A DNA stretch of 64,000 nucleotides from Marsupella aquatica (lineage: Eukaryota; Plantae; Marchantiophyta), in assembly GCA_973895155.1 (NCBI GenBank), contig OZ316897.1, positions 5,531,327 to 5,595,326 on the forward strand. Reading direction: 5' to 3'. The first letter of the stretch is position 1. Each line of letters begins with the position of its first letter. The notes under the pieces were generated by a model that saw only the letters and a program-made list of their open reading frames with translations, did no database searches and was not told the DNA's origin. The translations under genes and the position numbers were made by a program. Shown here piece after piece: positions 30,357 to 59,069 of this stretch.

Positions 30357-30440
30357 CAATCCATCTCAACATTGCAATGTCTGGTGTATCATAGTTCGCA
30401 ATCATTCCCAAAAGTGGCTGACAATCCGTCTCAAGTATCT
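30357..30440 (-). pseudogene. Stranded piece of G2 RNase H between LINE insertions
   Basis: Translates ILETDCQPLLGMIANYDTPDIAMLRWI, joining AFIRMINPEL near 24378. Confidence 0.88.
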
Positions 30441-30555
30441 CAAGCATTAGTGAATACTTGAGTCGATGGTTCGACTATCCAACCTGCACACATACATTTT
30501 CTAGTATTATACATGTGCAGAATCCCCCAACGTCAATGCAGCATATTGTAGCTTA

Positions 30556-31355
30556 GAAGGGCAATCGGCTGCGGTTTGAGCTCAGACTTTGCCAGAGCAT
30601 TGGAAACAGTGATAATGTATCATTGGCAAAGTTAGAGCTGCAACCGACATCGTTTGATATGCACTTTAGCATGCGCGATCTGCTACGTCTCCAGTTTCGC
30701 GATTCTGAGCTCGGGGCGAAATTTCACTTCGAGTTGGAAGGGCAATCGGCTGCGGTTTGAGCTCAGATTTTGCCAGAGCATTGGAAACAACAAGAATGTA
30801 TCACTGGCAAAGTTAGAGCTACAACCGACATCGTTTGATATGCACTTTAGCATGCACGATCTGTTACGTCTCCAGTTTCGCGATTCTGAGCTCGGGGCGA
30901 AATTTCACTTCGAGTTGGAAGGGCAATCGGCTGCGGTTTGAGCTCAGATTTTGCCAGAGCATTGGAAACAGCAAGAATGTATCACTGGCAAAGTTAGAGC
31001 TGCAACCGACATCGTTTGATATGCACTTTAGCATGCACGATCTGTTACGTCTCCAGTTTCGCAATTTTGAGCTCGGGGTGAAATTTCACTTCGAGTTGGA
31101 AGGGAAATTGGCTGCGGTTTAAGCTCAGACTTTGCCAGAGCATTGGACACAGCGAGAATGTATCACTGGCAAAGTTAGAGCTGCAACCGACATCGTTTGG
31201 TATGCACTTTAGCATGCACGATCTGCTACGTGTCCAATTTCGGGATTCTGAGCTTGGGTCGAAATTTCACTTCGAGTTGGAAGGGCAATCGGCTGCGGTT
31301 TGAGCTCAGATTTTGGCAGAGTGTTGCAAACAGCGAGAGTGTATCACTGGCAAAG
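30556..31355 (+). repeat. 181-bp tandem monomers of LINE 5'UTR (piece B)
   Basis: Unit starts at ~30699, 30880, 31061, 31242 plus a partial first unit. Confidence 0.92.
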
Positions 31356-32076
31356 CTTTGTGATGGCAACGGAGGAGATTGCCCATCTCAAGGCTTTGCT
31401 TGAGAAAATCTTAGTTGTGGCTGAAAACTCCGCAATTGAGATTACCACACTCAGCAAGGAGGTGACGGAGCTAAAGAATGAGAATGTCAAGCAAAAGAGG
31501 TTGATTAGTGATCTTCGATCTCAAACTCAGGAGAATGGTAAGCAACTCTCATTGCTTGCATCATGTTTCGGAGACATGGAGAAGAGTATGTGCCCAGAGA
31601 AATCAGTGATACATGAGGCTGTAGGGGAGATTGAGGAGAAGCTCAAAACCTTTGCACAGGCTGCAAAACAATCACATATGGAATTTGTCCAAGCCAAGGA
31701 GGAGGAGAGAAGAGCACTAGAGGAAGAACCCAAGAACCAGCATGCAAGAGTCAGCAACTGTAAAATATCAGGCCTTGTTGAGGAGGAGAAGGAAGACACC
31801 AAGAAGGTAGCAATTTCATTCTTCCAATCTCAGATGAAAGTGCATGACCCTATCATTTTGCAAGCATATAGGATTGGGCAAAAGAAGGGGGACCTTCCAC
31901 ATCCAATCTTGGTGAAATTTGCAGCTGAATCCGAGAAAGCTAGAGTGATGGCTAACAGGAGCATGCTTAAAGGGCTAAGGATTTGGTTGGATGATGATCT
32001 GACTCCCACACAAGTCCAAGCAAGGAAAATTGAGCTTGAGAAGGTGAGGGTAGCCAAAGACCAAGGATTGGTAGCC
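30556..32076 (+). mobile_element. LINE piece B: monomer 5'UTR (spliced form) plus ORF1 (ATG 31363), broken near the ORF1 end
   Basis: 181-bp monomers, ORF1 up to GGATTGGTAGCC, then filler DNA. Confidence 0.92.
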
Positions 32077-32122
32077 AAAGACCAAAGTTTGTGCAAAGCC
32101 TGCTGAACTCCTTTGTCCAAAC

Positions 32123-32960
32123 GCGATTCTGAGCTTGGGGCGAAATTTCACTTCGAGTTGGAAGGGCAATCGGCTGCGGTTTAAGCTCAGACTTTGCCAG
32201 AGCATTGGAAACAGCGAGAATGTATCACTGGCAAAGTTAGAGCTGCAACCGACATCGTTTGGTATGCACTTTAGCATGCGCGATCTGCTATGTCTCCAGT
32301 TTCGCGATTCTGAGCTTGGGGCGAAATTTCACTTCGAGTTGGAAGGGCAATCGGCTGCGGTTTAAGCTCAGACTTTGCCAGAGCATTGGAAACAGCGAGA
32401 ATGTATCACTGGCAAAGTTAGAGCTGCAACCGACATCGTTTGATATGCACTTTAGCATGCGCAATCTGCTACGTCTCTAGTTTCGCGATTCTGAGCTCGG
32501 GGTGAAATTTCACTTCGAGTTGGAAGGGCAATCGGCTGCGATTTGAGCTCAGATTTTGCCAGAGCATTGGAAACAGCAAGAATGTATCACTGGCAAAGTT
32601 AGAGCTGCAACCGACATTGTTTGATATGCACTTTAGCATGCACGATCTGTTACGTCTCCAGTTTCGCAATTCTGAGCTTGGGGCAAAATTTCACTTCGAG
32701 TTGGAAGGGAAATTGGCTACGGTTTAAGCTCAGACTTTGCCAGAGCATTGGAAACAGCGAGAATGTATCACTGGCAAAGTTAGAGCTGCAACCGACATCG
32801 TTTGGTATGCACTTTAGCATGCACGATCTGCTACGTGTCCAATTTCGGGATTCTGAGCTTGGGGCGAAATTTCACTTCGAGTTGGAAGGGCAATCGGCTG
32901 CGGTTTGAGCTCAGATTTTGGCAGAGTGTTGCAAACAGCGAGAGTGTATCACTGGCAAAG
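32123..32960 (+). repeat. 181-bp tandem monomers (4 full + 1 partial), probable internal promoter
   Basis: Unit starts 32123, 32304, 32485, 32666, 32847. Confidence 0.93.
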
Positions 32961-32967
32961 CTTTGTG

Positions 32968-33738
32968 ATGGCAACGGAGGAGATTGCCCATCTCAAGGCT
33001 TTGCTTGAGAAAATCTTAGTTGTGGCTGAAAACTCCGCAATTGAGATTACCACGCTCAGCAAGGAGGTGACGGAGCTAAAGAATGAGAATGTCAAGCAAA
33101 AGAGGTTGATTAGTGATCTTCGATCTCAAACTCAGGAGAATGGTAAGCAACTCTCATTGCTTGCATCGTGTTTTGGAGACATGGAGAAGAGTATGTGCCC
33201 AGAGAAATCAGTGATACATGAGGCTGTAGGGGAGATTGAGGAGAAGCTCAAAACCTTTGCACAGGCTGCAAAACAATCACATATGGAATTTGTCCAAGCC
33301 AAGGAGGAGGAGAGGAGAGCACTAGAAGAAGAACACAAGAACCAGCATGCAAGAGTCAGCAACTGCAAAATATCAGGCCTTGTTGAGGAGGAGAAGGAAG
33401 ACACCAAGAAGGTAGCAATTTCATTCTTCCAATCTCAGATGAAAGTGCATGACCCTATCATTTTGCAAGCATATAGGATTGGGCAAAAGAAGGGGGACCT
33501 TCCACGTCCAATCTTGGTGAAGTTTGCAGCTGAATCCGAGAAAGCTAGAGTGGTGGCTAACAGGAGCATGCTTAAAGGGCTAAGGATTTGGTTGGATGAT
33601 GATCTGACTCCCACACAAGTCCAAGCAAGGAAAATTGAGCTTGAGAAGGTGAGGGTAGCCAAAGACCAAGGATTGGTAGCCTACTTGCGCAATGGACAAG
33701 CTGTTGTTACCAATAAGAAGAGAGTTGTTTCTAAATGA
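32968..33738 (+). CDS. LINE ORF1, 256 aa (coiled coil + RRM-like nucleic-acid chaperone)
   Basis: ATG MATEEIAHL; heptad-rich N-terminus; conserved in B and E. Confidence 0.9.
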   Translation: MATEEIAHLKALLEKILVVAENSAIEITTLSKEVTELKNENVKQKRLISDLRSQTQENGKQLSLLASCFGDMEKSMCPEKSVIHEAVGEIEEKLKTFAQAAKQSHMEFVQAKEEERRALEEEHKNQHARVSNCKISGLVEEEKEDTKKVAISFFQSQMKVHDPIILQAYRIGQKKGDLPRPILVKFAAESEKARVVANRSMLKGLRIWLDDDLTPTQVQARKIELEKVRVAKDQGLVAYLRNGQAVVTNKKRVVSK

Positions 33739-33750
33739 TGGATTGGGACC

Positions 33751-36700
33751 TTGAGAGTCATGGCATGGAATGTTTCAGGACTTTCCATAGAAACAGCAAT
33801 TGGAGGGGAACCTTTGTTTGAGAATTTTGACATCTTGCTTTTCACGGAGACTTGGGAATATGAGGGAAATGCTCTACCTAGCATTAAAGGCTTTACTTGC
33901 ATACAATCCATCTTCAATGAGAAGAAGACCACACGGGGAAGAGGGTTTGGAGGCATTGCTGTCTACACCAAGAATCAACTTCAACACATCACCTCTATTG
34001 AACATGAAGATCCCAGCAAGCAGTTCATGGTGGTGAGACTTCATACCAGAGGTACTCCATCATTTCTGATTGTCACCTACTTTGCTCCCCTTAATATGAA
34101 TGTCTATAAGATGGGAATTGCTGATGCACATTATCCATTTCATAGGTTAATCCAAGTCATTCATGATATATCACCACTAGGGGAGACATGGATAGTGGGG
34201 GACTTTAATGCCAGGGTATCTAATGAACAATTTACTGAAAGTGAGGACTTAGGAACTTTACCTTGGTCATCATGTAGTGAAGAGATACCTTGGGTGAGAG
34301 AGGCTCTTGACACCAGAACAAATGACATGACACGTCACTTTTTGCATTTGGGGGCTTCTTGTAATCTAAGAATATTGAATGGGCTTGAGAGATTTCCCCA
34401 ATCATCTGGTTACACTTTTAGATCTAAACAAGGATGTAGTACCATTGATTACCTTCTTGCCTCACCTACCTCTGCCACTAGAGTGGTTGACTTTCAAATA
34501 CTTGATCAACAACCAGAGTCTTCACACTTGCCTTTGTTGTTCCATCTTGACCTGACCACAATCCCAAACAAAGTGCATAGAAAGCCAGTACCCAAACCTC
34601 TGTTTCTAGACCCTGATAGAGAAGTCATCTTCAAAGCCAACTTTGAACATCTTCTCCATACCCTGGATGATCAGATTGAGCTCTCAGAAGTCATAGCACA
34701 AGCAGCAGCCTCTACTTTCTCCACCAAACCCCCTAGAAAGCAAAACATGAAGGCTTGGTTTGACGAGGATTGTGCTAGAGCAAGGATGCAAGCAAGATCA
34801 CATTCAGGGGAAAAGAGACTTTTGGCATTCACTATGTACAAGAACTTCATCAAACACAAGAAGAGGTGCTTCTTGAAGAGTCATCAACAATCACTATGTG
34901 AGGAGTTCATCAAACATCCAAAACGTTTTTGGGAGAGAATGCAATCAGGCAAGACTACTCCCCCCTTGGATCACCAGGACCTGGTAACCTATGTCACATC
35001 CTTGTATTTCTTTCCAGATGCTAGTGGCATGCCTATGCCCCTTGGGGACACCATTCAGTTTACAGAGAGGGAGGTGAAGGTGCATCTTTCCCACATGCAA
35101 CATGGGAAAGCTAAAGATCTGTTGGGCCTGAACTTGGAGCTTCTTTTGTGGGGAGGACCCTCTTTACTAACAAACTTGGTGCATGAGCTGAATCAAGCAA
35201 TGGTTTTAGGTTTACCTAAAGCTTGGATGACCAGAAGAGTGGTGCCTATCTTCAAGGCAGGCAACAAGGACGATGTGCACAACTACAGAACCATCATGGT
35301 AGGCAATACTTTTGCTAAAGTTTTGGGAGGACTACTTGAAGCCAGATTAAGCTCTTGGTTGGAGAGTGAGATGAAAAGGGCACCTTCACAAGCAGGTTTT
35401 AGGAGAGAATTCAGCACTATGGATCACATTCTCTGCTTGAGGGTGTTGTGTGAAAAGGCCAAATCTCCACATAAACCATTATTTTGCTTGTTTGTGGACT
35501 TCTCCAAGGCCTTTGACAAAGTTTCCCGATCCAAGCTTTGGGATAGGATGGTGGAGTTGGAAGTGCCTGAAGAGCTCAGGTTGGCTGTTTCTAAATTGTA
35601 CCAAGAAGTGCGCATCAAACTTTCAAAGGAAACCTCTGAAGAAATCTGGAGCACTCTTGGGGTGATCCAAGGTTGTCCTCTCTCACCAACTCTCTTTGGC
35701 ATCTTCATTGATCAGCTACACAACATTTTGGAGGAGCATGGTGGAGTTGGCACTCAATTGGGTAGGTTTGTCCTCCAACTTCTTATATTTGCAGATGATG
35801 TGGTCCTACTTGCTCATGCTCAAGAAGCTTTGCAAAGACATCTCAATGCCTTGGAGGAGTTTTGTCAAGCAACAGGGATGGTAGTCAACCTCAAGAAGAC
35901 CAAGTGTTTGGGCATTGGCACACGACAAAATCCAGAGCTCTACTTCCAAGGGAATCTGGTGGAATTTGTGAGGACCTACAAATACCTTGGGGTGGAGTTC
36001 TCTCAAAACTTGAGTTGGGCCTCATGTGTAAAATCTAGGGCTGCCAATGGGTACAGAGCTTTTTATGCATTCATGAACAAATGCAAAAGAGCTGGTCTAC
36101 ACACTTGGAGGTTAAGGAAACATCTCTTTGGAGCTTTGGTGAAACCAGTCATTCTTTATGGAGCACCAATTTGGGGAGCAGGTGTGTCTAAATCTGGGTG
36201 GCAACAGATTGAGGGGCTGCAAAAGCTATTTCTTGAGATGGAGCTTGGGATCAAGTCACAAACCCCATATACACTTACACTTGCAGAGGCAGGCTTGTTT
36301 CCTTTGGAGGTGGAGGCACTCTTCCACACACTCAAATACATCATGCGTGTAAGAGAGTTGGAGGAAAACAGATTTCCTTTTCATGCCTTGCGCTCATCTT
36401 CAGCTAAAGGGTGGTATGCAGATGTGTGCAGGTGGGCCCATGCTTGGGATTTTCCTGAACATGAATGGCCAACACACCCAACCAAGCTAAGAGCAAAACT
36501 TGAGCAAAAGGCTTTGCACAAACTTTGGCATGAACCTAGCCCACGACAACAATACTACATGAGAGATGTGAACCCCATGAAGAAATATCGAGAACAAGAA
36601 TACTTATCTAGCACTATCTCAGTACAACTTAGACAACTTATTGCTCAGTATAGACTAAGCTCACACCACCTTGAAGTAGAACAAGGGAGATGGAAGGATA

Positions 36701-36954
36701 TTGACAGGAAAAAGAGGGTTTGTCAACTATGTGATAGCTCTAGTATAGAGAATGAATATCATGTATTCATTGCTTGCAAGTTTTATGAGGGGGTTAGGAT
36801 GGCATCTCAAATCTTGGTGAAAGATTTGTATGCATTGTTTGGTCTGCCCCCTCAGCAACTTGGAAGATATATCTTTGCGGTGGATAGGGAAAGGAGAATA
36901 GGTTTGGAAAATCTTTCAGGGCTCTCTAGGTCCATAGTTTCTTTGAGGACATAG
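33751..36954 (+). CDS. LINE ORF2, ~1067 aa, APE endonuclease-RT-CCHC, intact; start codon uncertain
   Basis: All APE and RT motifs present; C-terminal RLSSHHLEVEQGRW..CQLC..ENEYH..C. Confidence 0.95.
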   Translation: MRVMAWNVSGLSIETAIGGEPLFENFDILLFTETWEYEGNALPSIKGFTCIQSIFNEKKTTRGRGFGGIAVYTKNQLQHITSIEHEDPSKQFMVVRLHTRGTPSFLIVTYFAPLNMNVYKMGIADAHYPFHRLIQVIHDISPLGETWIVGDFNARVSNEQFTESEDLGTLPWSSCSEEIPWVREALDTRTNDMTRHFLHLGASCNLRILNGLERFPQSSGYTFRSKQGCSTIDYLLASPTSATRVVDFQILDQQPESSHLPLLFHLDLTTIPNKVHRKPVPKPLFLDPDREVIFKANFEHLLHTLDDQIELSEVIAQAAASTFSTKPPRKQNMKAWFDEDCARARMQARSHSGEKRLLAFTMYKNFIKHKKRCFLKSHQQSLCEEFIKHPKRFWERMQSGKTTPPLDHQDLVTYVTSLYFFPDASGMPMPLGDTIQFTEREVKVHLSHMQHGKAKDLLGLNLELLLWGGPSLLTNLVHELNQAMVLGLPKAWMTRRVVPIFKAGNKDDVHNYRTIMVGNTFAKVLGGLLEARLSSWLESEMKRAPSQAGFRREFSTMDHILCLRVLCEKAKSPHKPLFCLFVDFSKAFDKVSRSKLWDRMVELEVPEELRLAVSKLYQEVRIKLSKETSEEIWSTLGVIQGCPLSPTLFGIFIDQLHNILEEHGGVGTQLGRFVLQLLIFADDVVLLAHAQEALQRHLNALEEFCQATGMVVNLKKTKCLGIGTRQNPELYFQGNLVEFVRTYKYLGVEFSQNLSWASCVKSRAANGYRAFYAFMNKCKRAGLHTWRLRKHLFGALVKPVILYGAPIWGAGVSKSGWQQIEGLQKLFLEMELGIKSQTPYTLTLAEAGLFPLEVEALFHTLKYIMRVRELEENRFPFHALRSSSAKGWYADVCRWAHAWDFPEHEWPTHPTKLRAKLEQKALHKLWHEPSPRQQYYMRDVNPMKKYREQEYLSSTISVQLRQLIAQYRLSSHHLEVEQGRWKDIDRKKRVCQLCDSSSIENEYHVFIACKFYEGVRMASQILVKDLYALFGLPPQQLGRYIFAVDRERRIGLENLSGLSRSIVSLRT

Positions 36955-37085
36955 TTGTCCTCTTCTGAGCAATCTCTTTTGGTTGCTCTTTTCTTTGATT
37001 GCATTGTACTTTACTTTTTGTGGCAGCTCCTTTGACTTTCATGGTCCCGGAGCTTATAATACATTAAAATAAAAAAATTAAAAAA

Positions 37086-40000: not shown

Positions 40001-40189
40001 GAATAGGTTTGGAAAATATTTCAGGGCTCTCTAGGTCCATAGTTTCTTTGAGGACATAGTTGTCCTCTTCTGAGCAATCTCTTTTGGTTGCTCTTTTCTT
40101 TGATTGCATTGTACTTTACTTTTTGTGGCAGCTCCTTTGACTTTCATGGTCCCGGAGCTTATAATACATTACCATTACCATTACCATTA
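37086..40189 (+). mobile_element. LINE piece D, starting inside the APE domain, with a 26-bp frameshifting deletion near 39577
   Basis: Begins ATTGCTGTCTAC (equivalent to 33955 of C); (TTACCA)n tail joined to G2 RNase H. Confidence 0.93.
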
Positions 40190-41272: not shown

Positions 41273-44012
41273 TTTACTAATAGCATTAACTTTTTCTACA
41301 CTAGGACTTCGCCCACAAGAACCACAATGTTGTCCCACTACCATTACTTCTTTTAACCCAAATGCAGATTTCTCTCCTGAAAGCATTACTCTAGCCTCTA
41401 TCATGCGCTGCAAAATTGCCTCAACATCCTGCATATGATCCCCAAAAAAATTCCTTATCCCATCCTCTCGTACCGTCTCATCTCTCTTTAGTTCCAAACA
41501 TCCTTTAATAGGTATGTCATCAAGGAAGGGTCGGGTCTTGTCAGGAATAAAACGCTGCAGGATCAAATTCATGGCGTTTTGCATATGTGCTACCGAGTTT
41601 GTAGCATCTTGAGGCAAGGTACACATTTTAACTAATCCCAACGGTGTTTGCATCGTTGTTATGTCTCGGCTACACTTAGACAACTGGAATTGATCGTACC
41701 CCGAATAAAGGTCTCCTATCGAGTAAATCGCCCTACCAGCAAACTCTTCTGCAAATTCATCTACAACCGGCCCAGTACCAACATTCCTAATTGTAACCCT
41801 ATTAGGTGGTTGCATATCTTGGATGAACGCAATTTCCCATTTTTCTTCTTAACATGCAGTAAACCACTGATTTGAGTATGGGGCTTCAGATCACTCAAGA
41901 ATCTTCGCCTTCAACTTCTCCTTAAGTAATTCCATAAGCTTTGGCATTAGTGCCCGTGGAACCGGAAGTGGTCTCAAATCCCATGGAATATGTGGTACTG
42001 TAAAAATAATCATTGGGGTTACCTCTCTCGGGTTAACACATCCAATCTCATCTAAATTAAAGGAAAAAGCTTTCCCATGTCTACTTATCATCTCTTCAAA
42101 CCTCTCTTTCTCTACATCCCAAAGTAATCCATCATCTCCTACTCTAATCTGATCAAGAGTCTCTTCAGTGAACACATGCCCAATCCCTTTTGGGTCTCTC
42201 AAGCTAGGTTCTTCTCTAGCTTTTTCAATCAACCCTCGAGCATCTAAGGGCAAAGGTACAGCTGCAGGTCTCACCTTCTTGTCAACTGTCTTATACTTTG
42301 TGTTCACATTAATTTGACTCCCTATAAAATTGCTAATCCCTCTATACAATTCCTTTCCAATTTCGATCTCACTCATTCCTCTTTCCATCAGTTCTAAGGT
42401 TCGCTCTACTGTTTCCCCTATCCCAAACTCATCTATATAGCCCTCTAAACACTCATCTGGTTCTATTCCTAATCTCTTATGTAATCTAGCTTCCTCTCTA
42501 CATAACCCACGTACAATCCTTGTACAACACTCTCTTTTTCTAACATGGACTATAACTCTTCCAAACCCAAACCCAACAAAGGATGAAACAAAAATTTCTC
42601 TAACTCCCCTAATGTGGACGATTTTCCCGCCATGGCGCCTTGTTCAGTCGTCTCCCTATTCAAGGCGCCTAGTCAAAATCCTCAAACTTCCCTTCATTTT
42701 TCTTCCCTTCTCGTAGCTCTATACGATTTCTAGGATGGGCTGCTTGTACTATCGGGAATTGAATCATTTTAGACCCATCCCTACTCCTGATCAAAGCCAC
42801 ATGCGTCCCATCATCTAGTACCTGTGTTGCCATCCTCATCTCAGTGATAAATGGCTGCCCTAAAATCATTTGCATGGGAAGACTCTCATGAACAAAAACA
42901 TTCATCAGTTCCACAATGTCCCCAATTCGGAGCTTAACTCCAGGACAAGCTCCCCAAAAACTATTCTTGTCTGCACTAACAGATCTAACTCCCCACCCAC
43001 TATATCGATCTACTGCCCATTGTCCCTCCTCATAAATACGCATGGAAATAATATTTACTTCTGAACCTGAATCTAATAAAGCTCTCACAGGACTCTTAAT
43101 TCTATCTAACTCCACCTCACATTCACTACACCCTCGTGCCCAATGCATTTTCCTAACATCCATGGCTATCGAGCACCAAGCTAAAGCTCTCTCTCTCTCA
43201 TCTGCTCTCATAGCCTCCACCCCCACCTGCTCTTGACTCGTGGATTCTCCTCTCTCATAGCCCTCTCGTCCCCCACTCACTTTACCCACAAAAGGCATCA
43301 CTCTTTCTTCCCCTTCGTCCTCCGAGTCATAACTCCCTTCTTCTGCCAAGGTACATGCCACCCCTTGTGGCCCTTCCTTTAGGATGCGTTTTCTCTTGAC
43401 CTGCGTCAAGATAACATCTTGCACATCTCTCCTCATACACCCTATTACCTCCTTGTTTGTTAGACCTCTCACTTCTTGGTTCCAAAATTTGGCACCAACC
43501 GCATTAAAGTCAACCTCCCACTCAATTTCCCTCCCTAATGGGTACCCTGGTTTCTTTCCTCCTACCTTCCCTCTCCCTTTTTGCTCTACCTTAGAACTCG
43601 TCCCTGGTTCTTCCCTCTTAATCTCCCCTGACTCTCGTTCTCTCTTTTCCCCCTCTTTACTACTAAATGATTCCCTCGAATCCCTTTGTTTCACCTCTAC
43701 TATTACCTCGGAACTGTCCTTCCCTTGCTGAATAGAGTTCACAAAAACTGGTGCTTTCCAACCAGTTTCCCTCCGCAAATACTCAGCATATCTCTTCTCA
43801 CTCACCTCATCAAAGTTAGACCTGGTACCACCACTCGCCTCTACTCTATCCCGTTCTGCTACATAAACCCTAGGCTCATACATCATTGCCCCAACCTTTG
43901 CCTTTCCCCTATGCTTTTCAACAAGCACCTTCATCCCTCCTTTACCAAAGTTTAATGGAACCCCTTCCCCATCGTCAAAGTATGCTAGCCTTTTCTTCCC
44001 TGGTTCCCCTAC
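41273..44012 (-). pseudogene. pol: G2 gag end, protease and reverse transcriptase (stops and frameshifts)
   Basis: ALLDSGSEVNII, ILGQPF, YKTVDKKVRP, DLYSGYDQ, LPQDATNSVAHMQ, PFLDDIPIKG. Confidence 0.88.
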
Positions 44013-47000
44013 TGTGGTGTGTCCCATGGCTCCCTAAACCCAAGAAACCCCCCAGCTCAAGCCGATTCCCGCAGGTTTCGTGCTTGGCGAGGCCGTTTCC
44101 GCGGCTTAGCGGCATGGGACGCTGCTAACCTTCTACTACTACTATTAACATTTTACACACATATACTGGACAGATCCTTCATCGGGTCATGAGATACGTA
44201 GCCGGCCTAATATAGGCCTTCCCCTGTCTTCCCCTGTCTTCTTGTTAGGTATGTTTGGATTCCGCCGCCGGAATGATCCCCAATAGGCTTGGTTAAGCCG
44301 CTAAGACCTCTCTCAGCTCGACACATCCAACTCTCACTCCCCTGCTTACTTTCCTTCCTTCTGTTGATGTGGGCACTCTTCACACAAGTTAATGCGACAC
44401 ACAAATAGCAAAATGACTCATTCTGACTGAGTCATACCATGCACTTGCCATACAAACAGTACATCTCATACACAAGTTCTGCGAACTAAGCCGTGAGGCC
44501 AACTCTATTCAGCTCTTAGGCATGAGGAAACATGAATATACACAAGGGTCACTGTATGACTAACCGAGAGCTTCTCGTACTACTTGATCCCAGCCCGGCT
44601 GGTGCAAACTAAAAACTTGCTAAAGAAGAGGCCCTGAGCTCCCCGCTGCCCAGGTACTTATCCTGGTAGTGGATCCGCCATTCTTTGCATCGTAAGCCTA
44701 ATCTACTTAACAGTAATCTACTTGCCCGAATCTACCTATGTACAGCAAGGCAGGAGCACAAGTGTTGCTCCTACCAGTGGGACCGCAATCCCACTAAGCT
44801 AAGTGTCAGGGCCGCTCCTGGTTCTGATCCTAATCCTAAACGTGGAGATCCGCGCCCGCCCTGCCCACTCACGCCTCCTCCCTCCACGTCCGCCCTCCCT
44901 AAAAGGAACGGCGCCCTTGCACCGTCACGACACCGGTGGTGGATCCTTAATGGACGCCCCCAACGCTTCCTCCTCAGCCACTGCCGTAGGTTCATTCTCT
45001 GACAGATTACCTGCCCTTGACTGAGTCAACTCTCCATCGGCCTGACTGGGTCCACCTTCGGCTTCAGCCTCGACACCGGCCTCGGCAATACCCACGGCTT
45101 CGGCCTCAGTCACTCCCTCGGCTTCGGCTTCAGCCACTCCCTCGGCTTCGGCCTCCCCTTCCCCTAGGGTAGTTGGATCCTTAGCCGTGACCCTGTCTGG
45201 GGTCGGTGCTGGGTCTACCTCCTTGATCACCACGGCCTGTGAAGTCGTATTACTCCTTGACCCTGAAGGTTTTCGCTTCTTCTTCGTTGGTGGCTCGGCA
45301 ACTGGTCCCTTCCCCTTCCCACTTACTTCCGGCACTGGTGCAGTTGGCGCGGCTTGTCCTTCGGCAATTACCACCCCTGGTAACTGGTTTGTCCCAACGG
45401 GAGATGGACCTGCTGCAGCTAAGCATTTAAATACTGCGGCTTGTTTCTTCAGCCGCTCTGTTTGGTTGTCGGCCCGCCGCTGTAGGTTCTCCATCTTCCT
45501 CGTGATTTCCTCCAACTCCTCTTGGGTTTCATCCAGGTCCTTACGTGCCCCCTCCAGCTCGTTTTTGGCCTCCTCCTGCTCCCTGTGGGCTTCCTCCAAT
45601 TCCTTCTTCAAGGTAGCCCTCTCCTCCCGGGTTGCTCTTAGCTCCTTGTCGAGCTCTGCAATGATGACAGACTCCATCTGGTTCATCTTGGCGTAAGTCT
45701 GTTCGAGCATCTCGTCCTTCTCCCTTAGGTCGGCCTTGAAGCTGGCCGTCAGGGACGCAAGCTCCTGCTGCAGCGCCATAATCCCTTGATAGGATTTCCC
45801 TAACTCGACCTCCTTCTGCTCAAGGGCTCCGCGGATTTTCTCGAGCTCCCCTTTCAACGCCCATTCCTTTCTTTGGGTCTCCGCCATGGCCCGGCTGTTG
45901 GCTGTTATGTGGGCCTCCTCTGTATTCTTCAGCTCTTGCTTCCACTTCTCCCTCTCTTTGATCGTGTCGGCCAACTCTCCCTGCGTCTGAGTTAGTTTAT
46001 CCTTGATATTCTGATTATCAGCCTGCGCGGTGTCCAACTGCCCCTGCATGATGTTCAGCTCATGACGTTTAATTCGCAGTTCATCTTGGGCTTTCTTGGC
46101 CGCCCTTAGATCTTCAATCTCGGCTTCCATCCTCCTAAGCCGCCGAATGACCTCATCCTTCTTGCTTCTCTCTAAAGCCACCGCTTCTTCTAATTGGTGC
46201 TTCTCCAACTGCTCCCTATGGAAAAAGGGTCCTATCTCCAACTCCTCTCCAAAGATGCCGAGCGCAAGTTCCCCACACATCTCACCATACTCCATGGCTC
46301 TATTCTTAGCGTAGGTGGAGTAAGTAGAAGTGATCGGCATCGCCCATCGTGGCCTCTGCTCCCAAGCCGTCCTGCGGATCTCTTCAATCGTGGCTAGAGG
46401 TTTGCTTCCTTTTTCGGCTAGCCGCCTGATGTCCTCCGGCCAATCTCCTCCTGGTAAATCCTTTTCCTTAGCCAGGGCGGCCTCTTCCTCCTGCTTGATT
46501 CGCTCCTGAAATTCCTGCACCGTCTGTTTTATGCCGTCGAAGCTCGGGGGAGCAACATCTGGTGGGGGAGACTCAGGGCTACTCTGCTGGTTGGGGTCCC
46601 CTCGCACTACCCTTGGAAGTGTGGGGACAAACCGGCCACAGGTCCTTACTCCTGGAACGTGATGGTCCGACCCATAGCCGGAATTATCATGGCTGCAGTC
46701 CTCCACTGCCTCCTCTACCTCTTGGACGTCCGGCTTCTCCCTCTCCTCTTCGTCGGTAGGAGCTTCAGGCAATTCTGCCTCAGACTCGGAGCTTGAGGTT
46801 CCCACGTACATTCGAACACCTGGCTTGGATTCCGGCCTGATTCTCTCCTTGTCTCCAGCAAAGGGGTTTTCTCTTGTGAGCCGGTGTAGGCCTACCTCTG
46901 TAGTAGTGTCCTGCATTGTTGCCGTTGCCGTTGTTGTTGCCGATGCCGATTTCTTTTCTTTCTCCAGTAGTTTCAGCAGACTCTGCATGCCTGGTTGCTG

Positions 47001-48663
47001 CATCGGCAAGTCTTCCTTCCTGGGCCTAAACACCTGCTCGATCGTAGGACTAACAGGTGGTTGAGGCTTCTCAGCCAACGGCCTCGGCGTTGGAGCTTCC
47101 TCGGGTGCCCTTACCTGCAGGGGAAGTACCAGGGCAAAAGTCTGACCTCTGGCATACCGGCACAACAGCGGCATGTGATAGCCAAGCCGCGACACGCTCC
47201 CCATGCCGATTACCTGCTGCTCCTCCTTTAAGATCTTCTTCAATTGGTTGAGGAGGTACCCGTTGTAGTCCCGGCTTGGGTCTGGCCTTTCTGCCAGATA
47301 GACCTGTGCCTTGCCGATCTCTGCCCTCGGCAAGTTACAATGCATGGTCACCCGCAAGAAGTCGATCATCTCTCCTATGTGCGGGTTGGTGCAGGTGTTC
47401 CGGAAGAAGCCATTCTTCGTTGATGGCCCGGGGAACGACCGGAACTCCTTGTCAGGCAAGGTCTTCCTGGTATCAACTTTGGTCTTATTGCCTATCGGCA
47501 AGCCAAACACTTCGGCAATTACCTTGGGAGTAAGATAGAAATCCTTCCCATATATCCTCGTGCAATTGGTCTCGGGTTCCCATGACCCCACGAATTCTAA
47601 TAGGTCTGACTCCGGTACCTCCGGCTTCAGCCATGGTAATCTTACAAAGGCCTCCAAGCCGGATCCGGCCATGAAGCCTTGGTACTTCTTGGTCTGCATG
47701 GCCGTAAAGCATGCATCCTCCTCCCGTGCAAAATGTAGTTGCACCTCCACCGGTAGGGTTGCCGCCCAGCCCTTCCAGGTGTCATCCCTGGTTGGAATGG
47801 CCTTGATGGGATCGACCTCCTCCTCTTCGGCTTCTCCCTGCCTCCTGCTCTGCTGCTCGGCTGGCTTCTTTGGTGCCGCCGACCTCGTTCTTTTTGCCGG
47901 GGTGGCTTCATCGTTGACGGCTCCCTTCCTCTTCATCTCTGCTGCCGTGGAGGTTTCTCCTAGCACCGTTGCCTGGGTCCACCTTTCCGTGCTACCCTTT
48001 AATTCCCAGTGTATGTCGTTGCAGTTCTTGATGGCCTCTCGGATGCCGATGACGCTGTCTTTGCAAAACAAAAGATCGTCGAGTTGATTGGAAGTAGGCG
48101 TCCACAGGAACTCGTCCTTGATGAGTTCGCCTCCTAAGAAAGCCGTCTTCTGCAGCTCCCACAATCGAGCGAGCTCCTGCCGTTCTCGAGCTGCCCTTTC
48201 TGACTCCTCGTCCTCGTAAGTCTTGATGTACTCAGTTGCCCGTTCGAACAGGCATCCCCAGAAATGTGCCGCTTGATTGACGTTGCTCATACCCTCCTTA
48301 GGTCGATCGTCGGTATCTACTCTCTCCCCGAGTGCTTGCCTAAGCAGCTGACAGTAGTTGGCCTCCCGTAGTCGTCTGCCTAGTTCGTGCTTGCAAATGA
48401 GCCACCATCTCCTGCAAGCGCTCCTTACCCCTCTCCTCTGCCGGTCCCTCTTCCCGTTGATCCTTCCTAGCCGCCGACGCTTAACGCGCCCTAACCCTAA
48501 TCAGGTTTTCACCCTCAGCCTTACCTCCGGCCTCTGCCCGGGTTCCATGGTTGCCCCTAATTGTTTATATTTTCCTTGTTTTGTCCCTATACTAAGGTGT
48601 TCCTAGGGTGCCTTCCTGCTTTACCCACTTAACCGGCCGAGTGATTCCTGTCTAGGCATCACA
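44013..48663 (-). mobile_element. 4.65-kb solo-LTR-like insertion carrying a long ORF
   Basis: TGTGGTG...CATCACA termini; TSD CCTAC (44008-44012, 48664-48668); removal restores G2 gag VKFVG|EPGKK; no terminal direct repeats or gag/pol inside. Confidence 0.87.
44925..48290 (-). CDS. 1121-aa LTR-borne accessory protein: plant-mobile-domain/transposon-accessory-like region, acidic disordered linker, long coiled coil, NLS-like KKKRK
   Basis: Uninterrupted ORF; GLEAFVRLPW..EF..IYGKDFYLTPKVIAEVFGLP; heptad-rich C-terminal third; homolog at 58121-64000. Confidence 0.85.
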   Translation of the reverse strand: MSNVNQAAHFWGCLFERATEYIKTYEDEESERAARERQELARLWELQKTAFLGGELIKDEFLWTPTSNQLDDLLFCKDSVIGIREAIKNCNDIHWELKGSTERWTQATVLGETSTAAEMKRKGAVNDEATPAKRTRSAAPKKPAEQQSRRQGEAEEEEVDPIKAIPTRDDTWKGWAATLPVEVQLHFAREEDACFTAMQTKKYQGFMAGSGLEAFVRLPWLKPEVPESDLLEFVGSWEPETNCTRIYGKDFYLTPKVIAEVFGLPIGNKTKVDTRKTLPDKEFRSFPGPSTKNGFFRNTCTNPHIGEMIDFLRVTMHCNLPRAEIGKAQVYLAERPDPSRDYNGYLLNQLKKILKEEQQVIGMGSVSRLGYHMPLLCRYARGQTFALVLPLQVRAPEEAPTPRPLAEKPQPPVSPTIEQVFRPRKEDLPMQQPGMQSLLKLLEKEKKSASATTTATATMQDTTTEVGLHRLTRENPFAGDKERIRPESKPGVRMYVGTSSSESEAELPEAPTDEEEREKPDVQEVEEAVEDCSHDNSGYGSDHHVPGVRTCGRFVPTLPRVVRGDPNQQSSPESPPPDVAPPSFDGIKQTVQEFQERIKQEEEAALAKEKDLPGGDWPEDIRRLAEKGSKPLATIEEIRRTAWEQRPRWAMPITSTYSTYAKNRAMEYGEMCGELALGIFGEELEIGPFFHREQLEKHQLEEAVALERSKKDEVIRRLRRMEAEIEDLRAAKKAQDELRIKRHELNIMQGQLDTAQADNQNIKDKLTQTQGELADTIKEREKWKQELKNTEEAHITANSRAMAETQRKEWALKGELEKIRGALEQKEVELGKSYQGIMALQQELASLTASFKADLREKDEMLEQTYAKMNQMESVIIAELDKELRATREERATLKKELEEAHREQEEAKNELEGARKDLDETQEELEEITRKMENLQRRADNQTERLKKQAAVFKCLAAAGPSPVGTNQLPGVVIAEGQAAPTAPVPEVSGKGKGPVAEPPTKKKRKPSGSRSNTTSQAVVIKEVDPAPTPDRVTAKDPTTLGEGEAEAEGVAEAEAEGVTEAEAVGIAEAGVEAEAEGGPSQADGELTQSRAGNLSENEPTAVAEEEALGASIKDPPPVS

Positions 48664-52152: not shown

Positions 52153-52568
52153 ATAACAAAGGCTATGTCACGTCGTCAACCTAGGCCTTAACCCGGGCTT
52201 CGGCTTAGACAGGCACATCCTTTGTCAATATGAGGGTTCGGGCAGGGAGGGAGGCACGGAATGCACCTAACTCACATAAACTAGCGCTAAGTGCGCCTAT
52301 TGTCATATACGGACACCTCTTAGGTATGGTTTGTGTTCCGCCATCGGAACGTACCTCAGTCGATAGCAGGATCGACCCCGGCTTACGGGCTTCTAAGCCT
52401 TTGTGTTGTCCGCCTTTGATCCGGATTTGATGGTATGGTAATGGTAATGGTAATGGTAATGTATTATAAGCTCCGGGATCATGAAAGTCAAAGGAGCTGC
52501 CACAAAAAGTAAAGTACAATGCAATCAAAGAAAAGAGCAACCAAAAGAGATTGCTCAGAAGAGGACAA

Positions 52569-55500
52569 CTATGTCCTCAAAGAAACTATGGACCTAGAGA
52601 GCCCTATGGACCTAGAGAGCCCTGAAAGATTTTCCAAACCTATTCTCCTTTCCCTATCCACCGCAAAGATATATCTTCCAAGTTGTTGAGGGGGCAGACC
52701 AAACAATGCATACAAATCTTTCACCAAGATTTGAGATGCCATCCTAACCCCCTCATAAAACTTGCAAGCAATGAATACATGATATTCATTCTCTATACTA
52801 GAGCTATCACATAGTTGACAAACCCTCTTTTTCCTGTCAATATCCTTCCATCTCCCTTGTTCTACTTCAAGGTGGTGTGAGCTTAGTCTATACTGAGCAA
52901 TAAGTTGTCTAAGTTGTACTGAGATAGTGCTAGATAAGTATTCTTGTTCTCGATATTTCTTCATGGGGTTCACATCTCTCATGTAGTATTGCTGCCGTGG
53001 GCTAGGTTCATGCCAAAGTTTGTGCAAAGCCTTTTGCTCAAGTTTTGCTCTTAGCTTGGTTGGGTGTGTTGGCCATTCATGTTCAGGAAAATCCCAAGCA
53101 TGGGCCCACCTGCACACATCTGCATACCACCCTTTAGCTGAAGATGAGCGCAAGGCATGAAAAGGAAATCTGTTTTCCTCCAACTCTCTTACACGCATGA
53201 TGTATTTGAGTGTGTGGAAGAGTGCCTCCACCTCCAAAGGAAACAAGCCTGCCTCTGCAAGTGTAAGTGCATATGGGGTTTGTGACTTGATCCCAAGCTC
53301 CATCTCAAGAAATAGCTTTTGCAGCCCCTCAATCTGTTGCCACCCAGATTTAGACACACCTGCTCCCCAAATTGGTGCTCCATAAAGAATGACTGGTTTC
53401 ACCAAAGCTCCAAAGAGATGTTTCCTTAACCTCCAAGTGTGTAGACCAGCTCTTTTGCATTTGTTCATGAATGCATAAAAAGCTCTGTACCCATTGGCAG
53501 CCCTAGATTTTACACATGAGGCCCAACTCAAGTTTTGAGAGAACTCCACCCCAAGGTATTTGTAGGTCCTCACAAATTCCACCAGATTCCCTTGGAAGTA
53601 GAGCTCTGGATTTTGTCGTGTGCCAATGCCCAAACACTTGGTCTTCTTGAGGTTGACTACCATCCCTGTTGCTTGACAAAACTCCTCCAAGGCATTGAGA
53701 TGTCTTTGCAAAGCTTCTTGAGCATGAGCAAGTAGGACCACATCATCTGCAAATATAAGAAGTTGGAGGACAAACCTACCCAATTGAGTGCCCACTCCAC
53801 CATGCTCCTCCAAAATGTTGTGTAGCTGATCAATGAAGATGCCAAAGAGAGTTGGTGAGAGAGGACAACCTTGGATCACCCCAAGAGTGCTCCAGATTTC
53901 TTCAGAGGTTTCCTTTGAAAGTTTGATGCGCACTTCTTGGTACAATTTAGAAACAGCCAACCTGAGCTCTTCAGGCACTTCCAACTCCACCATCCTATCC
54001 CAAAGCTTGGATCGGGAAACTTTGTCAAAGGCCTTGGAGAAGTCCACAAACAAGCAAAATAATGGTTTATGTGGAGATTTGGCCTTTTCACACAACACCC
54101 TCAAGCAGAGAATGTGATCCATAGTGCTGAATTCTCTCCTAAAACCTGCTTGTGAAGGTGCCCTTTTCATCTCACTCTCCAACCAAGAGCTTAATCTGGC
54201 TTCAAGTAGTCCTCCCAAAACTTTAGCAAAAGTATTGCCTACCATGATGGTTCTGTAGTTGTGCACATCGTCCTTGTTGCCTGCCTTGAAGATAGGCACC
54301 ACTCTTCTGGTCATCCAAGCTTTAGGTAAACCTAAAGCCATTGCTTGATTCAGCTCATGCACCAAGTTTGTTAGTAAAGAGGGTCCTCCCCACAAAAGAA
54401 GCTCCAAGTTCAGGCCCAACAGATCTTTAGCTTTCCCATGTTGCATGTGGGAAAGATGCACCTTCACCTCCCTCTCTGTAAACTGAATGGTGTCCCCAAG
54501 GGGCAAAGGCATGCCACTAGCATCTGGAAAGAAATACAAGGATGTGACATAGGTTACCAGGTCCTGGTGATCCAAGGGGGGAGTAGTCTTGCCTGATTGC
54601 ATTCTCTCCCAAAAACGTTTTGGATGTTTGATGAACTCCTCACATAGTGATTGTTGATGACTCTTCAAGAAGCACCTCTTCTTGTGTTTGATGAAGTTCT
54701 TGTACATAGTGAATGCCAAAAGTCTCTTTTCCCCTGAATGTGATCTTGCTTGCATCCTTGCTCTAGCACAATCCTCGTCAAACCAAGCCTTCATGTTTTG
54801 CTTTCTAGGGGGTTTGGTGGAGAAAGTAGAGGCTGCTGCTTGTGCTATGACTTCTGAGAGCTCAATCTGATCATCCAGAGTATGGAGAAGATGTTCAAAG
54901 TTGGCTTTGAAGATGACTTCTCTATCAGGGTCTAGAAACAGAGGTTTGGGTACTGGCTTTCTATGCACTTTGTTTGGGATTGTGGTCAGGTCAAGATGGA
55001 ACAACAAAGGCAAGTGTGAAGACTCTGGTTGTTGATCAAGTATTTGAAAGTCAACCACTCTAGTGGCAGAGGTAGGTGAGGCAAGAAGGTAATCAATGGT
55101 ACTACATCCTTGTTTAGATCTAAAAGTGTAACCAGATGATTGGGGAAATCTCTCAAGCCCATTCAATATTCTTAGATTACAAGAAGCTCCCAAATGCAAA
55201 AAGTGACGTGTCATGTCATTTGTTCTGGTGTCAAGAGCCTCTCTCACCCAAGGTATCTCTTCACTACATGATGACCAAGGTAAAGTTCCTAAGTCCTCAC
55301 TTTCAGTAAATTGTTCATTAGATACCCTGGCATTAAAGTCCCCCACTATCCATGTCTCCCCTAGTGGTGATATATCATGAATGACTTGGATTAACCTATG
55401 AAATGGATAATGTGCATCAGCAATTCCCATCTTATAGACATTCATATTAAGGGGAGCAAAGTAGGTGACAATCAGAAATGATGGAGTACCTCTGGTATGA

Positions 55501-55790
55501 AGTCTCACCACCATGAACTGCTTGCTGGGATCTTCATGTTCAATAGAGGTGATGTGTTGAAGTTGATTCTTGGTGTAGACAGCAATGCCTCCAAACCCTC
55601 TTCCCCTTGTGGTCTTCTTCTCATTGAAGATGGATTGTATGCAAGTAAAGCCTTTAATGCTAGGTAGAGCATTTCCCTCATATTCCCAAGTCTCCGTGAA
55701 AAGCAAGATGTCAAAATTCTTAAACAAAGGTTCCCCTCCAATTGTTGTTTCTATGGAAAGTCCTGAAACATTCCATGCCATGACTCTCAA
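52569..55790 (-). CDS. LINE ORF2, ~1073 aa, intact
   Basis: APE, RT and CCHC motifs; carries the 6-aa C-terminal duplication. Confidence 0.95.
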   Translation of the reverse strand: MRVMAWNVSGLSIETTIGGEPLFKNFDILLFTETWEYEGNALPSIKGFTCIQSIFNEKKTTRGRGFGGIAVYTKNQLQHITSIEHEDPSKQFMVVRLHTRGTPSFLIVTYFAPLNMNVYKMGIADAHYPFHRLIQVIHDISPLGETWIVGDFNARVSNEQFTESEDLGTLPWSSCSEEIPWVREALDTRTNDMTRHFLHLGASCNLRILNGLERFPQSSGYTFRSKQGCSTIDYLLASPTSATRVVDFQILDQQPESSHLPLLFHLDLTTIPNKVHRKPVPKPLFLDPDREVIFKANFEHLLHTLDDQIELSEVIAQAAASTFSTKPPRKQNMKAWFDEDCARARMQARSHSGEKRLLAFTMYKNFIKHKKRCFLKSHQQSLCEEFIKHPKRFWERMQSGKTTPPLDHQDLVTYVTSLYFFPDASGMPLPLGDTIQFTEREVKVHLSHMQHGKAKDLLGLNLELLLWGGPSLLTNLVHELNQAMALGLPKAWMTRRVVPIFKAGNKDDVHNYRTIMVGNTFAKVLGGLLEARLSSWLESEMKRAPSQAGFRREFSTMDHILCLRVLCEKAKSPHKPLFCLFVDFSKAFDKVSRSKLWDRMVELEVPEELRLAVSKLYQEVRIKLSKETSEEIWSTLGVIQGCPLSPTLFGIFIDQLHNILEEHGGVGTQLGRFVLQLLIFADDVVLLAHAQEALQRHLNALEEFCQATGMVVNLKKTKCLGIGTRQNPELYFQGNLVEFVRTYKYLGVEFSQNLSWASCVKSRAANGYRAFYAFMNKCKRAGLHTWRLRKHLFGALVKPVILYGAPIWGAGVSKSGWQQIEGLQKLFLEMELGIKSQTPYALTLAEAGLFPLEVEALFHTLKYIMRVRELEENRFPFHALRSSSAKGWYADVCRWAHAWDFPEHEWPTHPTKLRAKLEQKALHKLWHEPSPRQQYYMRDVNPMKKYREQEYLSSTISVQLRQLIAQYRLSSHHLEVEQGRWKDIDRKKRVCQLCDSSSIENEYHVFIACKFYEGVRMASQILVKDLYALFGLPPQQLGRYIFAVDRERRIGLENLSGLSRSIGLSRSIVSLRT

Positions 55791-55802
55791 GGTCCCAATC
55801 CA

Positions 55803-56573
55803 TCATTTAGAAACAACTCTCTTCTTATTGGTAACAACAGCTTGTCCATTGCGCAAGTAGGCCACCAATCCTTGGTCTTTGGCTACCCTCACCTTCTCAA
55901 GCTCAATTTTCCTTGCTTGGACTTGTGTGGGAGTCAGATCATCATCCAACCAAATCCTTAGCCCTTTAAGCATGCTCCTGTTAGCCATCACTCTAGCTTT
56001 CTCGGATTCAGCTGCAAACTTCACCAAGATTGGACGTGGAAGGTCCCCCTTCTTTTGCCCAATCCTATATGCTTGCAAAATGATAGGGTCATGCACTTTC
56101 ATCTGAGATTGGAAGAATGAAATTGCTACCTTCTTGGTGTCTTCCTTCTCCTCCTCAACAAGGCCTGATATTTTGCAGTTGCTGACTCTTGCATGCTGGT
56201 TCTTGTGTTCTTCCTCTAGTGCTCTCCTCTCCTCCTCCTTGGCTTGGACAAATTCCATATGTGATTGTTTTGCAGCCTGTGCAAAGGTTTTGAGCTTCTC
56301 CTCAATCTCCCCTACAGCCTCATGTATCACTGATTTCTCTGGGCACATACTCTTCTCCATGTCTCCAAAACACGATGCAAGCAATGAGAGTTGCTTACCA
56401 TTCTCCTGAGTTTGAGATCGAAGATCACTAATCAACCTCTTTTGCTTGACATTCTCATTCTTTAGGTCCGTCACCTCCTTGCTGAGCGTGGTAATCTCAA
56501 TTGCGGAGTTTTCAGCCACAACTAAGATTTTCTCAAGCAAAGCCTTGAGATGGGCAATCTCCTCCGTTGCCAT
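55803..56573 (-). CDS. LINE ORF1, 256 aa
   Basis: Near-identical to 32968-33738. Confidence 0.9.
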   Translation of the reverse strand: MATEEIAHLKALLEKILVVAENSAIEITTLSKEVTDLKNENVKQKRLISDLRSQTQENGKQLSLLASCFGDMEKSMCPEKSVIHEAVGEIEEKLKTFAQAAKQSHMEFVQAKEEERRALEEEHKNQHARVSNCKISGLVEEEKEDTKKVAISFFQSQMKVHDPIILQAYRIGQKKGDLPRPILVKFAAESEKARVMANRSMLKGLRIWLDDDLTPTQVQARKIELEKVRVAKDQGLVAYLRNGQAVVTNKKRVVSK

Positions 56574-56580
56574 CACAAAG

Positions 56581-56658
56581 CTGAAACTGTTGTTAGAATG
56601 TACTCTTAGACGACAAATAGAAATTGGGAGCAGTAGAGGATGTCAGTTGCAGCTCTAC
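56581..56658 (-). other. 78-nt GT-AG intron in LINE 5'UTR
   Basis: AAG|GTAGAG donor, TTCTAAC branch-like motif, TTTCAG| acceptor; exactly absent from B and C. Confidence 0.85.
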
Positions 56659-57496
56659 CTTTGCCAGTGATACACTCTCGCTGTTTGCAACACTCTGCCA
56701 AAATCTGGGCTCAAACCGCAGCCGATTGCCCTTCCAACTCGAAGTGAAATTTCGCCCCAAGCTCAGAATCCCGAAACTGGACACGGAGCAGATCGTGCAT
56801 GCTAAAGTGCATACCAAACGATGTCGGTTGCAGCTCTAACTTTGCCAGTGATATATTCTCGCTGTTTCCAATGCTCTGGCAAAGTCTGAGCTTAAACCGT
56901 AGCCAATTTCACTTCCAACTCGAAGTGAAATTTTGCCCCAAGCTCAGAATTGCGAAACTGGAGACGTAACAGATCGTGCATGCTAAAGTGCATATCAAAC
57001 AATGTCGGTTGCAGCTCTAACTTTGCCAGTGATACATTCTTGCTGTTTCCAATGCTCTGGCAAAATCTGAGCTCAAATCGCAGCCGATTGCCCTTCCAAC
57101 TCGAAGTGAAATTTCACCCCGAGCTCAGAATCGCGAAACTAGAGACGTAGCAGATTGCGCATGCTAAAGTGCATACCAAACGATGTCGGTTGCAGCTCTA
57201 ACTTTGCCAGTGATACATTCTCGCTGTTTCCAATGCTCTGGCAAAGTCTGAGCTTAAACCGTAGTCGATTGCCCTTCCAACTCGAAGTGAAATTTCGCCC
57301 CAAGCTTAGAATCGCGAAACTGGAGACGTAGCAGATCGCGCATGCTAAAGTGCATACCAAACGATGTCGGTTGCAACTCTAACTTTGCCAGTGATACATT
57401 CTCGCTGTTTCCAATGCTCTGGCAAAGTCTGAGCTTAAACCGCAGCCGATTGCCCTTCCAACTCGAAGTGAAATTTCGCCCCAAGCTCAGAATCGT
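56659..57496 (-). repeat. 181-bp tandem monomers of copy E
   Basis: Same 4 full + 1 partial layout as copy C. Confidence 0.93.
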
Positions 57497-59069
57497 GTTT
57501 GGACAAAGGGGAGTGCGAGCCATGGGTACTCAACCCGGGCTCGCAACCACTTACCCGCAAGTTGAACCCGGTGCACGACTTGGGTAGTGCGTTCGGCCAA
57601 GCGTTGGCACCTATACACAAGATTCACACATATACATACGCACAAGCATACAATCTCAATTTACATGAAGGAAATAATGGGAAAGGATTTTACTACATAG
57701 GAGACATATGCGTACACTTAGTTGACCCGAAAGCTCTAGAATGAACAGGTCCGAGGCTGCGGGTGTACACAACAGAGCCCGGCTCTGCACTCACCCAGCG
57801 AGCTTAGTCCTACACCCTCCCCTTGGTACTCTTTCACTCCCAGAGGTTGGGACTCCCCGCACATACCGCGGATGTCCAACACTGAGACTAAAAATCCCCT
57901 TATCTCTACCGAGGGGTGCACTAAATACTAAGGGCCGAGGAATGGAGTGCCCTTGCGCCCGAAGATTCGCTAACTAAGGTCCTAACTGAGCTGGCTGTCA
58001 GGCCGTAAAACGGCTTGTCTTATTAGAAGATCCTAATCTATGCAGGTTGTACAGCATGGCAGTGCTACTTTAACTAGGGCAGGTGCTTGTCCCTATAGCC
58101 TAATTTAGGTACTCCTAACTCTATTTTAATTGTACTCCGCCGCTAATGCCTGGCACGTTGCCAGAGCCGCCTGAGTGGGAGCGGCTATCCCGCTGCCTTT
58201 TGAGCCTATCGGCGTCCTGCTTGAGTAGCTGGACCTGGTCTAGCAGAGATTTGTTCTCCCGCTTCACCGCGTCTGCCTCTTCCGTGGCCTCCTGGCATGC
58301 CTCCTCCAGTTGCTGGGTGTCACTTGTCAGCTTATCCACCAACTGGGCCTATTTTGTGACTTCTCCTTGAAGCCGCGCCATCTCTGCCTTCAGGGTGTCA
58401 ATCTTGACTGTGTCCCATTGAGACCTGGAGTCAGCTTCCTCCAGATCCTTTTGCCAACTGACGGCTTGCCCCTTCAAACCATCAATCTTGGTTCGGAGCC
58501 GCACAATCTCGGCGTCCTTTCCGAGCCCGGCTTGTACTACTAACGCTGCTTGGGCCCTAGCCTTGGCAACCTGGTCCTCCGTGGCCGTTACCAGAGGCCA
58601 TAGTTGCTAGAGTTCAGCCTCCAGGGTTGCCACTTTGTCCTTCAGGTAGGCAGACTCAACCCGATATTGCTCTATTCTTTGCGCTGTCTCTGCCTGCGCA
58701 TGTCCTGCCCTTACAGCCGCAACCAACTCCTGGTTGAAGAAGTAGGCCACCCTCCGGGCCATGTATTCCCTGGTGTCCCGAGAGATCTGTTGCGAGAAAT
58801 CTCCCAACAACCCGTTCAGAAATGTGCCCGACGCAAAGAGTTCCGGATGGTCTAGATTGTGTCCATCTGGATTCGGGCACGGGCAGACTCCAACCCGTGC
58901 GGGAGTGGGAGTGGACATATCCAGCCCTTGAGGTAAGTCGGTCGAAGGGGCTGGTTCCACTGGAGGCGAGCGGTTCTCCTGCACGACCGCAGGGGGTGGC
59001 GGAATCCCTTCGGCTATCGTGGCATCTGCTTTGGGTATGGCTTCATCCAGCCCGGTTTTGATTGCATTG

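Follow-up and report, generated by a model that had tools for sequence, protein, structure and literature searches.

A candidate spliceosomal intron in the leader of a young LINE from the liverwort Marsupella aquatica: genomic copies with and without the same 78 nucleotides

In human L1, the integrated copies called SpIREs derive from RNA whose splicing either stayed inside the 5'UTR or joined it to a site in ORF1 (Larson et al. 2018, PMC5860796). They represent about 2% of full-length L1PA1-6 elements; their promoter activity is lower, and they are considered to be dead ends (PMC5860796). New changes in the L1 5'UTR can create new splice events, and the splicing was demonstrated by RT-PCR (PMC5860796). 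Penelope-like elements also possess a 5'UTR intron, which is 75 bp long in Penelope and 398 bp long in Chlamys-3_cRei (Craig et al. 2021, PMC8557442, citing Arkhipova 2003), and the retention of this intron was ascribed to an unusual transposition mechanism (PMC8557442). For a plant LINE, no report of spliced integrated copies was found in the literature searched, which is not a proof of absence.

The window analysed here is a transposon-rich stretch of 64,000 nucleotides of the genome of Marsupella aquatica (contig OZ316897.1). It contains about ten copies and fragments of one very young LINE, which are 98-99% identical to each other as estimated by self-BLAST. Three of these copies, designated B, C and E, cover the junction between the leader and ORF1, and they differ there by a stretch of 78 nt (Table 1).

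Table 1. Features of the LINE copies that cover the leader-ORF1 junction; positions are those of the window and a slash marks a boundary or joint
Feature	Position	Strand	Description
Copy E	52436..57509	minus	Full-length LINE with the 78 nt: 4.7-monomer leader, ORF1, ORF2, (CATTAC)n tail; from self-BLAST, tail and 5' end read
Monomer array of E	56639..57495	minus	181-bp tandem repeat; Tandem Repeats Finder, monomers in register
Putative spliceosomal intron	56581..56658	minus	78 nt: 20 nt of monomer start and 58 nt of unique T-rich sequence, no ATG
Donor	56657..56661	minus	AAG/GT (AAG/GTAGAG); position 56658 has G, against T at all other monomer boundaries
Branch-point-like motif	56592..56596	minus	CTAAC; branch A 13 nt before the acceptor
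Acceptor	56581..56583	minus	CAG/
ORF1 of E	55803..56573	minus	256 aa, intact
ORF2 frame of E	52569..55790	minus	Exo_endo_phos and RVT_1, intact; first ATG is codon 4
Copy C	32110..37066	plus	Full-length LINE without the 78 nt; junction 32960/32961
ORF1 of C	32968..33738	plus	Intact
ORF2 of C	33751..36954	plus	Intact
Copy B	30553..32076	plus	4.4-monomer leader and 714 nt of ORF1, without the 78 nt; junction 31355/31356

The LINE family and its surroundings

The element is an APE-type LINE, as judged by its predicted endonuclease and reverse transcriptase domains, the 3' ends shared among its copies and the simple-repeat tail. A Pfam search placed an apurinic-type endonuclease (PF03372, E 2e-10) and a reverse transcriptase (PF00078, E 7e-31) in ORF2, while no Pfam match was obtained for ORF1. 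Copies D and F and the fragments at 18439, 29936 and 41272 have a common 3' end, several copies are 5'-truncated, and the tails consist of (CATTAC)3-4 where the 3' ends were read directly. The family is young and probably active. Copies C and E have an identical 5' end and an identical order of monomer variants, and the leader of C comprises 4.6 monomers. The leader of E (56574-57509) is about 936 nt long, with two to four ATGs per monomer; in B, C and E, the last monomer is devoid of the ATG nearest to ORF1 (GAGAATG changed to GAGAGTG). No RNA family of the Rfam type was detected in the E leader at E values up to 1.

The nearest named relatives of ORF1 were found in the leafy liverwort Calypogeia fissa (53-62% identity), and the relatives overall, C. 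fissa among them, show 53-83% identity. No homologous leader was found in the ORF1 relatives for which upstream DNA was available (L001 and L002), their leaders being unrelated to the one described here. In the C. fissa locus (L001, 2780-2990), the annotated "intron" of ORF1 is the 3' terminal part of a different LINE, which carries a (GACTT)n tail and sits inside ORF1, so that this gene-model intron was rejected as a homologue of the 78 nt. Exact-protein look-ups with ORF1 of E and of C, made for further copies of the family, gave no match, and neither did two metagenome scans, one with the start of ORF1 and one with the core of the monomer.

Copies B, C and D follow one another head to tail over 30553-40192. 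Copy B breaks off within ORF1 after a slipped repeat of 21 nt, and C begins at the true 5' end of the family, 33 odd nt past this break. The tail of C consists of one CATTA followed by an A-rich stretch of 20 nt, directly next to the 5'-truncated copy D; B is cut on its 3' side, and no clear target duplication was seen. This arrangement looks like the outcome of template switching during reverse transcription, or of nested insertions with loss of the target. The possibility that C had split one old element into B and D was considered and rejected, as no private substitutions were found in 1.9 kb of D, compared with six in 714 nt of B.

Several other rearranged elements are present in the window. 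At the end of copy A (3091-5555), the last 822 nt or so are repeated three times head to tail (3091-3925, 3913-4747 and 4735-5555). These pieces may derive from different source RNAs, since one 18-nt unit is present near the end of ORF2 in the third piece and two units in each of the first two. The segments 24379-27557 and 29936-30365, which correspond to E 56032-52854 and 52858-52429, represent successive portions of a single 5'-truncated LINE copy, with about 2.4 kb of other DNA between them. Two long minus-strand ORFs of 452 and 1121 aa at 42669-48290 had no Pfam match and may belong to another transposon.

Long and short forms of the leader

The minus strand of copy E reads ...CTGGCAAAG/GTAGAGCTGC...CATTCTAACAACAGTTTCAG/CTTTGTG ATG, where the 78 nt between the two slashes are located between the last full monomer and ORF1, the ATG of which (56573..56571) stands 7 nt past the acceptor. 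Re-reading of the sequence thus bears out the preliminary description, according to which E holds a 78-nt GT-AG stretch with CTAAC close to the acceptor, 7 nt before the start of ORF1. The first 20 nt of this stretch continue the 181-bp monomer in register, with 18 of 20 positions identical, and the array delimited by Tandem Repeats Finder likewise ends 20 nt inside it, at 56639. The remaining 58 nt are unique and differ in composition from the monomer: they contain 36% T and 12% G versus 27% T and 30% G, and their A+T content is 62% versus 49% in the upstream monomer.

All of the remaining monomer boundaries in B, C and E (12 of 12) read CAAAG/TTAGAG, so a lone T>G is sufficient to make the GT of the donor. 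The preliminary description had placed this change in the last monomer. The single T>G stands, but the base is the first one of a truncated extra monomer, which the array includes, and does not lie within the last full monomer.

The 78 nt display the features of a U2-type intron, namely GT..AG ends, the AG/GTR and YAG/ context, a branch-point motif, and suitable length and U-richness. The length of 78 nt and the U-richness were judged compatible with what is usual for plant introns. Several of the signals depart from the optimum. Positions +4 to +6 of the donor are off consensus, which makes it a weak site, and pairing with U1 is limited to positions -2 to +3. The distance from branch point to acceptor is short, and a second AG is present at -7.

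Copies B and C read CTGGCAAAG/CTTTGTGATG, precisely the 78 nt being missing, although the AG microhomology at the junction lets the position of the cut shift by 2 nt in either direction. The junction sequences thereby agree with the earlier statement that both copies have the structure of an exact splice product, and copy C retains its monomers as well as intact ORF1 and ORF2, as had also been noted.

The long form is ancestral, and on the evidence of the monomer register the short form arose by removal: since the 78 nt start by continuing the monomer, it is very unlikely that they were inserted later. In one public run (X2), the long form is also in the majority, and it is present under another organism label as well.

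Four public runs with four organism labels, all in the form of short assembly contigs, were compared over 56300-56950. In X2, which is most likely a DNA run given that its longest contig is 185 kb, a contig from the ORF1 side (depth 1267) stops at 56582, the point where the two forms part. One arm continues as the long form over 56553-56688, with 0 differences from E in 136 nt and a word depth of 962; the other has the 78-nt skip (joint 56580>56659) and a word depth of 336. The ratio of long to short is about 74:26, and the two depths sum to that of the shared flank, indicating that there are essentially two forms. The coexistence of both forms as genomic copies, as originally described, is therefore seen in the window and also in X2, at about 3:1. 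The short form is thus not confined to B and C, and its share of 26% of the depth implies many copies.

Run X5, under another organism label, contains the long form over 56553-56728, with two differences in all, one of them listed at 56667. No alternative letter was listed at the donor position in any of the four runs. In X3, the largest and deepest run, no joint was seen, which is not evidence of absence, as 57% of it was read, some bins were empty and contigs drop variants. In X6, which has the fourth organism label, a low-depth contig covers 56423-56607 with 0 differences in its ORF1 part and in the terminal 27 nt of the 78-nt stretch, and diverges past 56607 into unrelated sequence. This contig could represent a copy that was 5'-truncated inside the 78 nt, and hence derived from unspliced RNA, or else a rearrangement.

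Possible origins of the short form

The 78 nt are probably a weak, recently created U2-type intron in the leader of the LINE, both RNA forms of which would be reverse-transcribed. The T>G at the start of the truncated monomer would have placed, by accident, a donor upstream of a usable acceptor, and the LINE transcripts would be spliced in part only. Partial splicing is to be expected from the limited pairing of the donor with U1 (-2 to +3) and from the proximity of branch point and acceptor. Unspliced and spliced RNA might then both be reverse-transcribed and integrated, giving rise to the E type, which is in the majority, and to the B/C type, which accounts for about one quarter. As splicing would excise no more than the short linker that separates ORF1 from the monomers, the spliced copies would keep the presumed promoter and both ORFs, and would probably remain competent; copies such as C may be source elements themselves.

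The alternative with most in its favour, although unlikely, is that a single deletion of 78 nt between the two AGs occurred in one source element, either at the DNA level or during reverse transcription, and that this subfamily was then amplified, the GT..AG ends being coincidental. The 2-nt AG microhomology at the junction is consistent with this, and copies without the 78 nt keep all the parts needed for their own amplification. Other small indels do occur in the family: four of at least 3 nt (4, 5, 18 and 26 nt) were found between the copies, all in the 3' third, and the 18-nt one is a tandem duplication. Subfamily structure exists too, since C has the single 18-nt unit, as in D, and E has two. 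B and C are moreover neighbours, and 119 nt upstream of the junction both carry a derived A (31237/32842) in place of the G found in E and in every other monomer; this base could mark a single intron-less lineage.

A random deletion would rarely have the ends of the missing piece. When 200,000 random deletions of 78 nt were made in the window, with equivalent placements allowed, only 0.54% could be placed with GT..AG ends. The AG/GTR..YAG context was also present in 0.03%, although a chance deletion is less improbable than this raw value since the feature was picked out of a very large scan, and a CTRAY motif near the acceptor was present as well in 0.004%. The composition of the 78 nt and the CTAAC motif also count against a single deletion, and the removal of 78 nt with intron ends by chance is considered unlikely. 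A hairpin over the 78 nt, skipped by the polymerase, was rejected as a mechanism: RNA folding around this stretch was no better than that of shuffled sequences (z = 0.18), and skipping is accordingly not suggested.

The number of losses bears on the same question. Among the sites that differ between B, C and E over about 1.6 kb, B is the odd one at 34, E at 12 and C at 3. B and C have 37 differences in about 1520 sites, including seven in each of two upstream monomers, whereas C and E compared monomer by monomer have 5, 1, 2 and 3. B also has the letter of copy A at two positions of ORF1 where C and E have another. Copy C, which has lost the 78 nt, is thus closer to the long-form copy E than to the other short-form copy, B, a result that counts against a single deletion; as such a loss is irreversible, this hints at two losses, as would result from recurrent splicing. 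The hint of more than one independent loss is a weak one, coming from three junctions only, with B and C adjacent to each other. It is further weakened by the derived A common to B and C, by the different number of 18-nt units in C and E, and by the ORF2 tree of the family, which is a near star.

Gene conversion between B and C at the junction, where they have only one difference in about 300 nt, was also considered and rejected, because B is equally close to E in this part once the changes private to E are set aside. The odd bases of E at 56708, 56786 and 56911 are such private changes, and all run contigs carry the letter of B and C at these sites. The 18-nt unit mentioned above is an in-frame tandem duplication of AGGGCTCTCTAGGTCCAT near the end of ORF2, at 52605-52640 in E and 36918-36937 in C. 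Two units are found in E, F, A and the copies at 29936 and 41272, and one in C, D and the copies at 5331 and 18882, which makes it a handy subfamily marker.

Within the splicing explanation, it is doubtful that the intron is maintained as a functional component of the element. According to this possibility, the spliced RNA would serve as the well-expressed message, through intron-mediated enhancement or export, while the unspliced RNA would be favoured as the template. Such a division of labour between RNA forms would be retrovirus-like, in a non-LTR element, and if true it would explain why copies with the 78 nt are in an excess of about 3:1 though the spliced copies look fully competent. The preliminary description had suggested that persistence of the intron would imply a selective role. 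This claim found no support: the donor is one point change away from the monomer sequence, the copies are 98-99% alike and the leaders of the relatives are unrelated. Since this leader is not shared by the related liverwort LINEs, whose ORF1 is 53-83% identical, the putative intron is no older than the head of this family. With a donor made by a point change in a very young family whose relatives have other leaders, persistence needs only weak splice sites and little elapsed time.

An ancestral short form into which the E-type copies gained the 78 nt by insertion is highly improbable, as nothing but the bare difference in presence speaks for it, and both the in-register match of the first 20 nt to the monomer and the predominance of the long form in X2, together with its occurrence under another organism label, speak against it. 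An assembly artefact, with one of the forms absent from the organism, can be dismissed almost entirely: young repeats are indeed hard to assemble, but X2 has both forms as separate contigs with depths that add up (962 + 336 versus 1267).

Comparison with known retroelements

If the copies without the 78 nt prove to be one deletion subfamily, the 78-nt difference is an ordinary subfamily marker. If the splicing is confirmed, it will be a clear SpIRE-like case outside mammals, and of an unusual kind, since the promoter-like monomers and both genes are spared and the spliced copies therefore need not be dead ends. The 3:1 mixture in a young family would in that case provide a direct test of whether a leader intron helps or hinders the element and which isoform is the preferred template.

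In the layout of its head, the liverwort element is similar to mouse L1, the 5'UTR of which consists of tandem monomers and a non-monomeric tether followed by ORF1. Here too, a monomer array is followed by a truncated monomer, a short unique linker and ORF1. The sequences and hosts are unrelated, and in the liverwort LINE it is the truncated monomer with the linker that constitutes the removed piece.

Penelope-like elements are alike in having a short 5'UTR intron in a retroelement, kept by most genomic copies. They differ in possessing a GIY-YIG endonuclease and pLTRs, whereas the liverwort LINE has an APE endonuclease, RVT_1 and ordinary LINE anatomy. Membership of the liverwort element in that group was rejected, as Pfam gives only Exo_endo_phos and RVT_1 and the head is a direct array of monomers; the relation to Penelope-like elements is one of analogy.

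Among known systems, the human SpIREs come closest and are similar in several respects. In both cases the LINE leader has its own donor and acceptor, the integrated copies have the sequence expected from exact splicing at these sites, the splicing event results, or in the liverwort would result, from a change in the 5'UTR sequence, and unspliced copies are in the majority. The short form is much more frequent in the liverwort, with about 26% of the X2 junction depth as compared with about 2% for SpIREs. The human host is a mammal in which splicing was shown by RT-PCR; the liverwort host is a plant, and splicing is deduced there from DNA. Finally, SpIREs lose several hundred nt of the promoter or a part of ORF1, whereas the liverwort LINE loses only a 78-nt linker, with its monomers and ORFs left intact.
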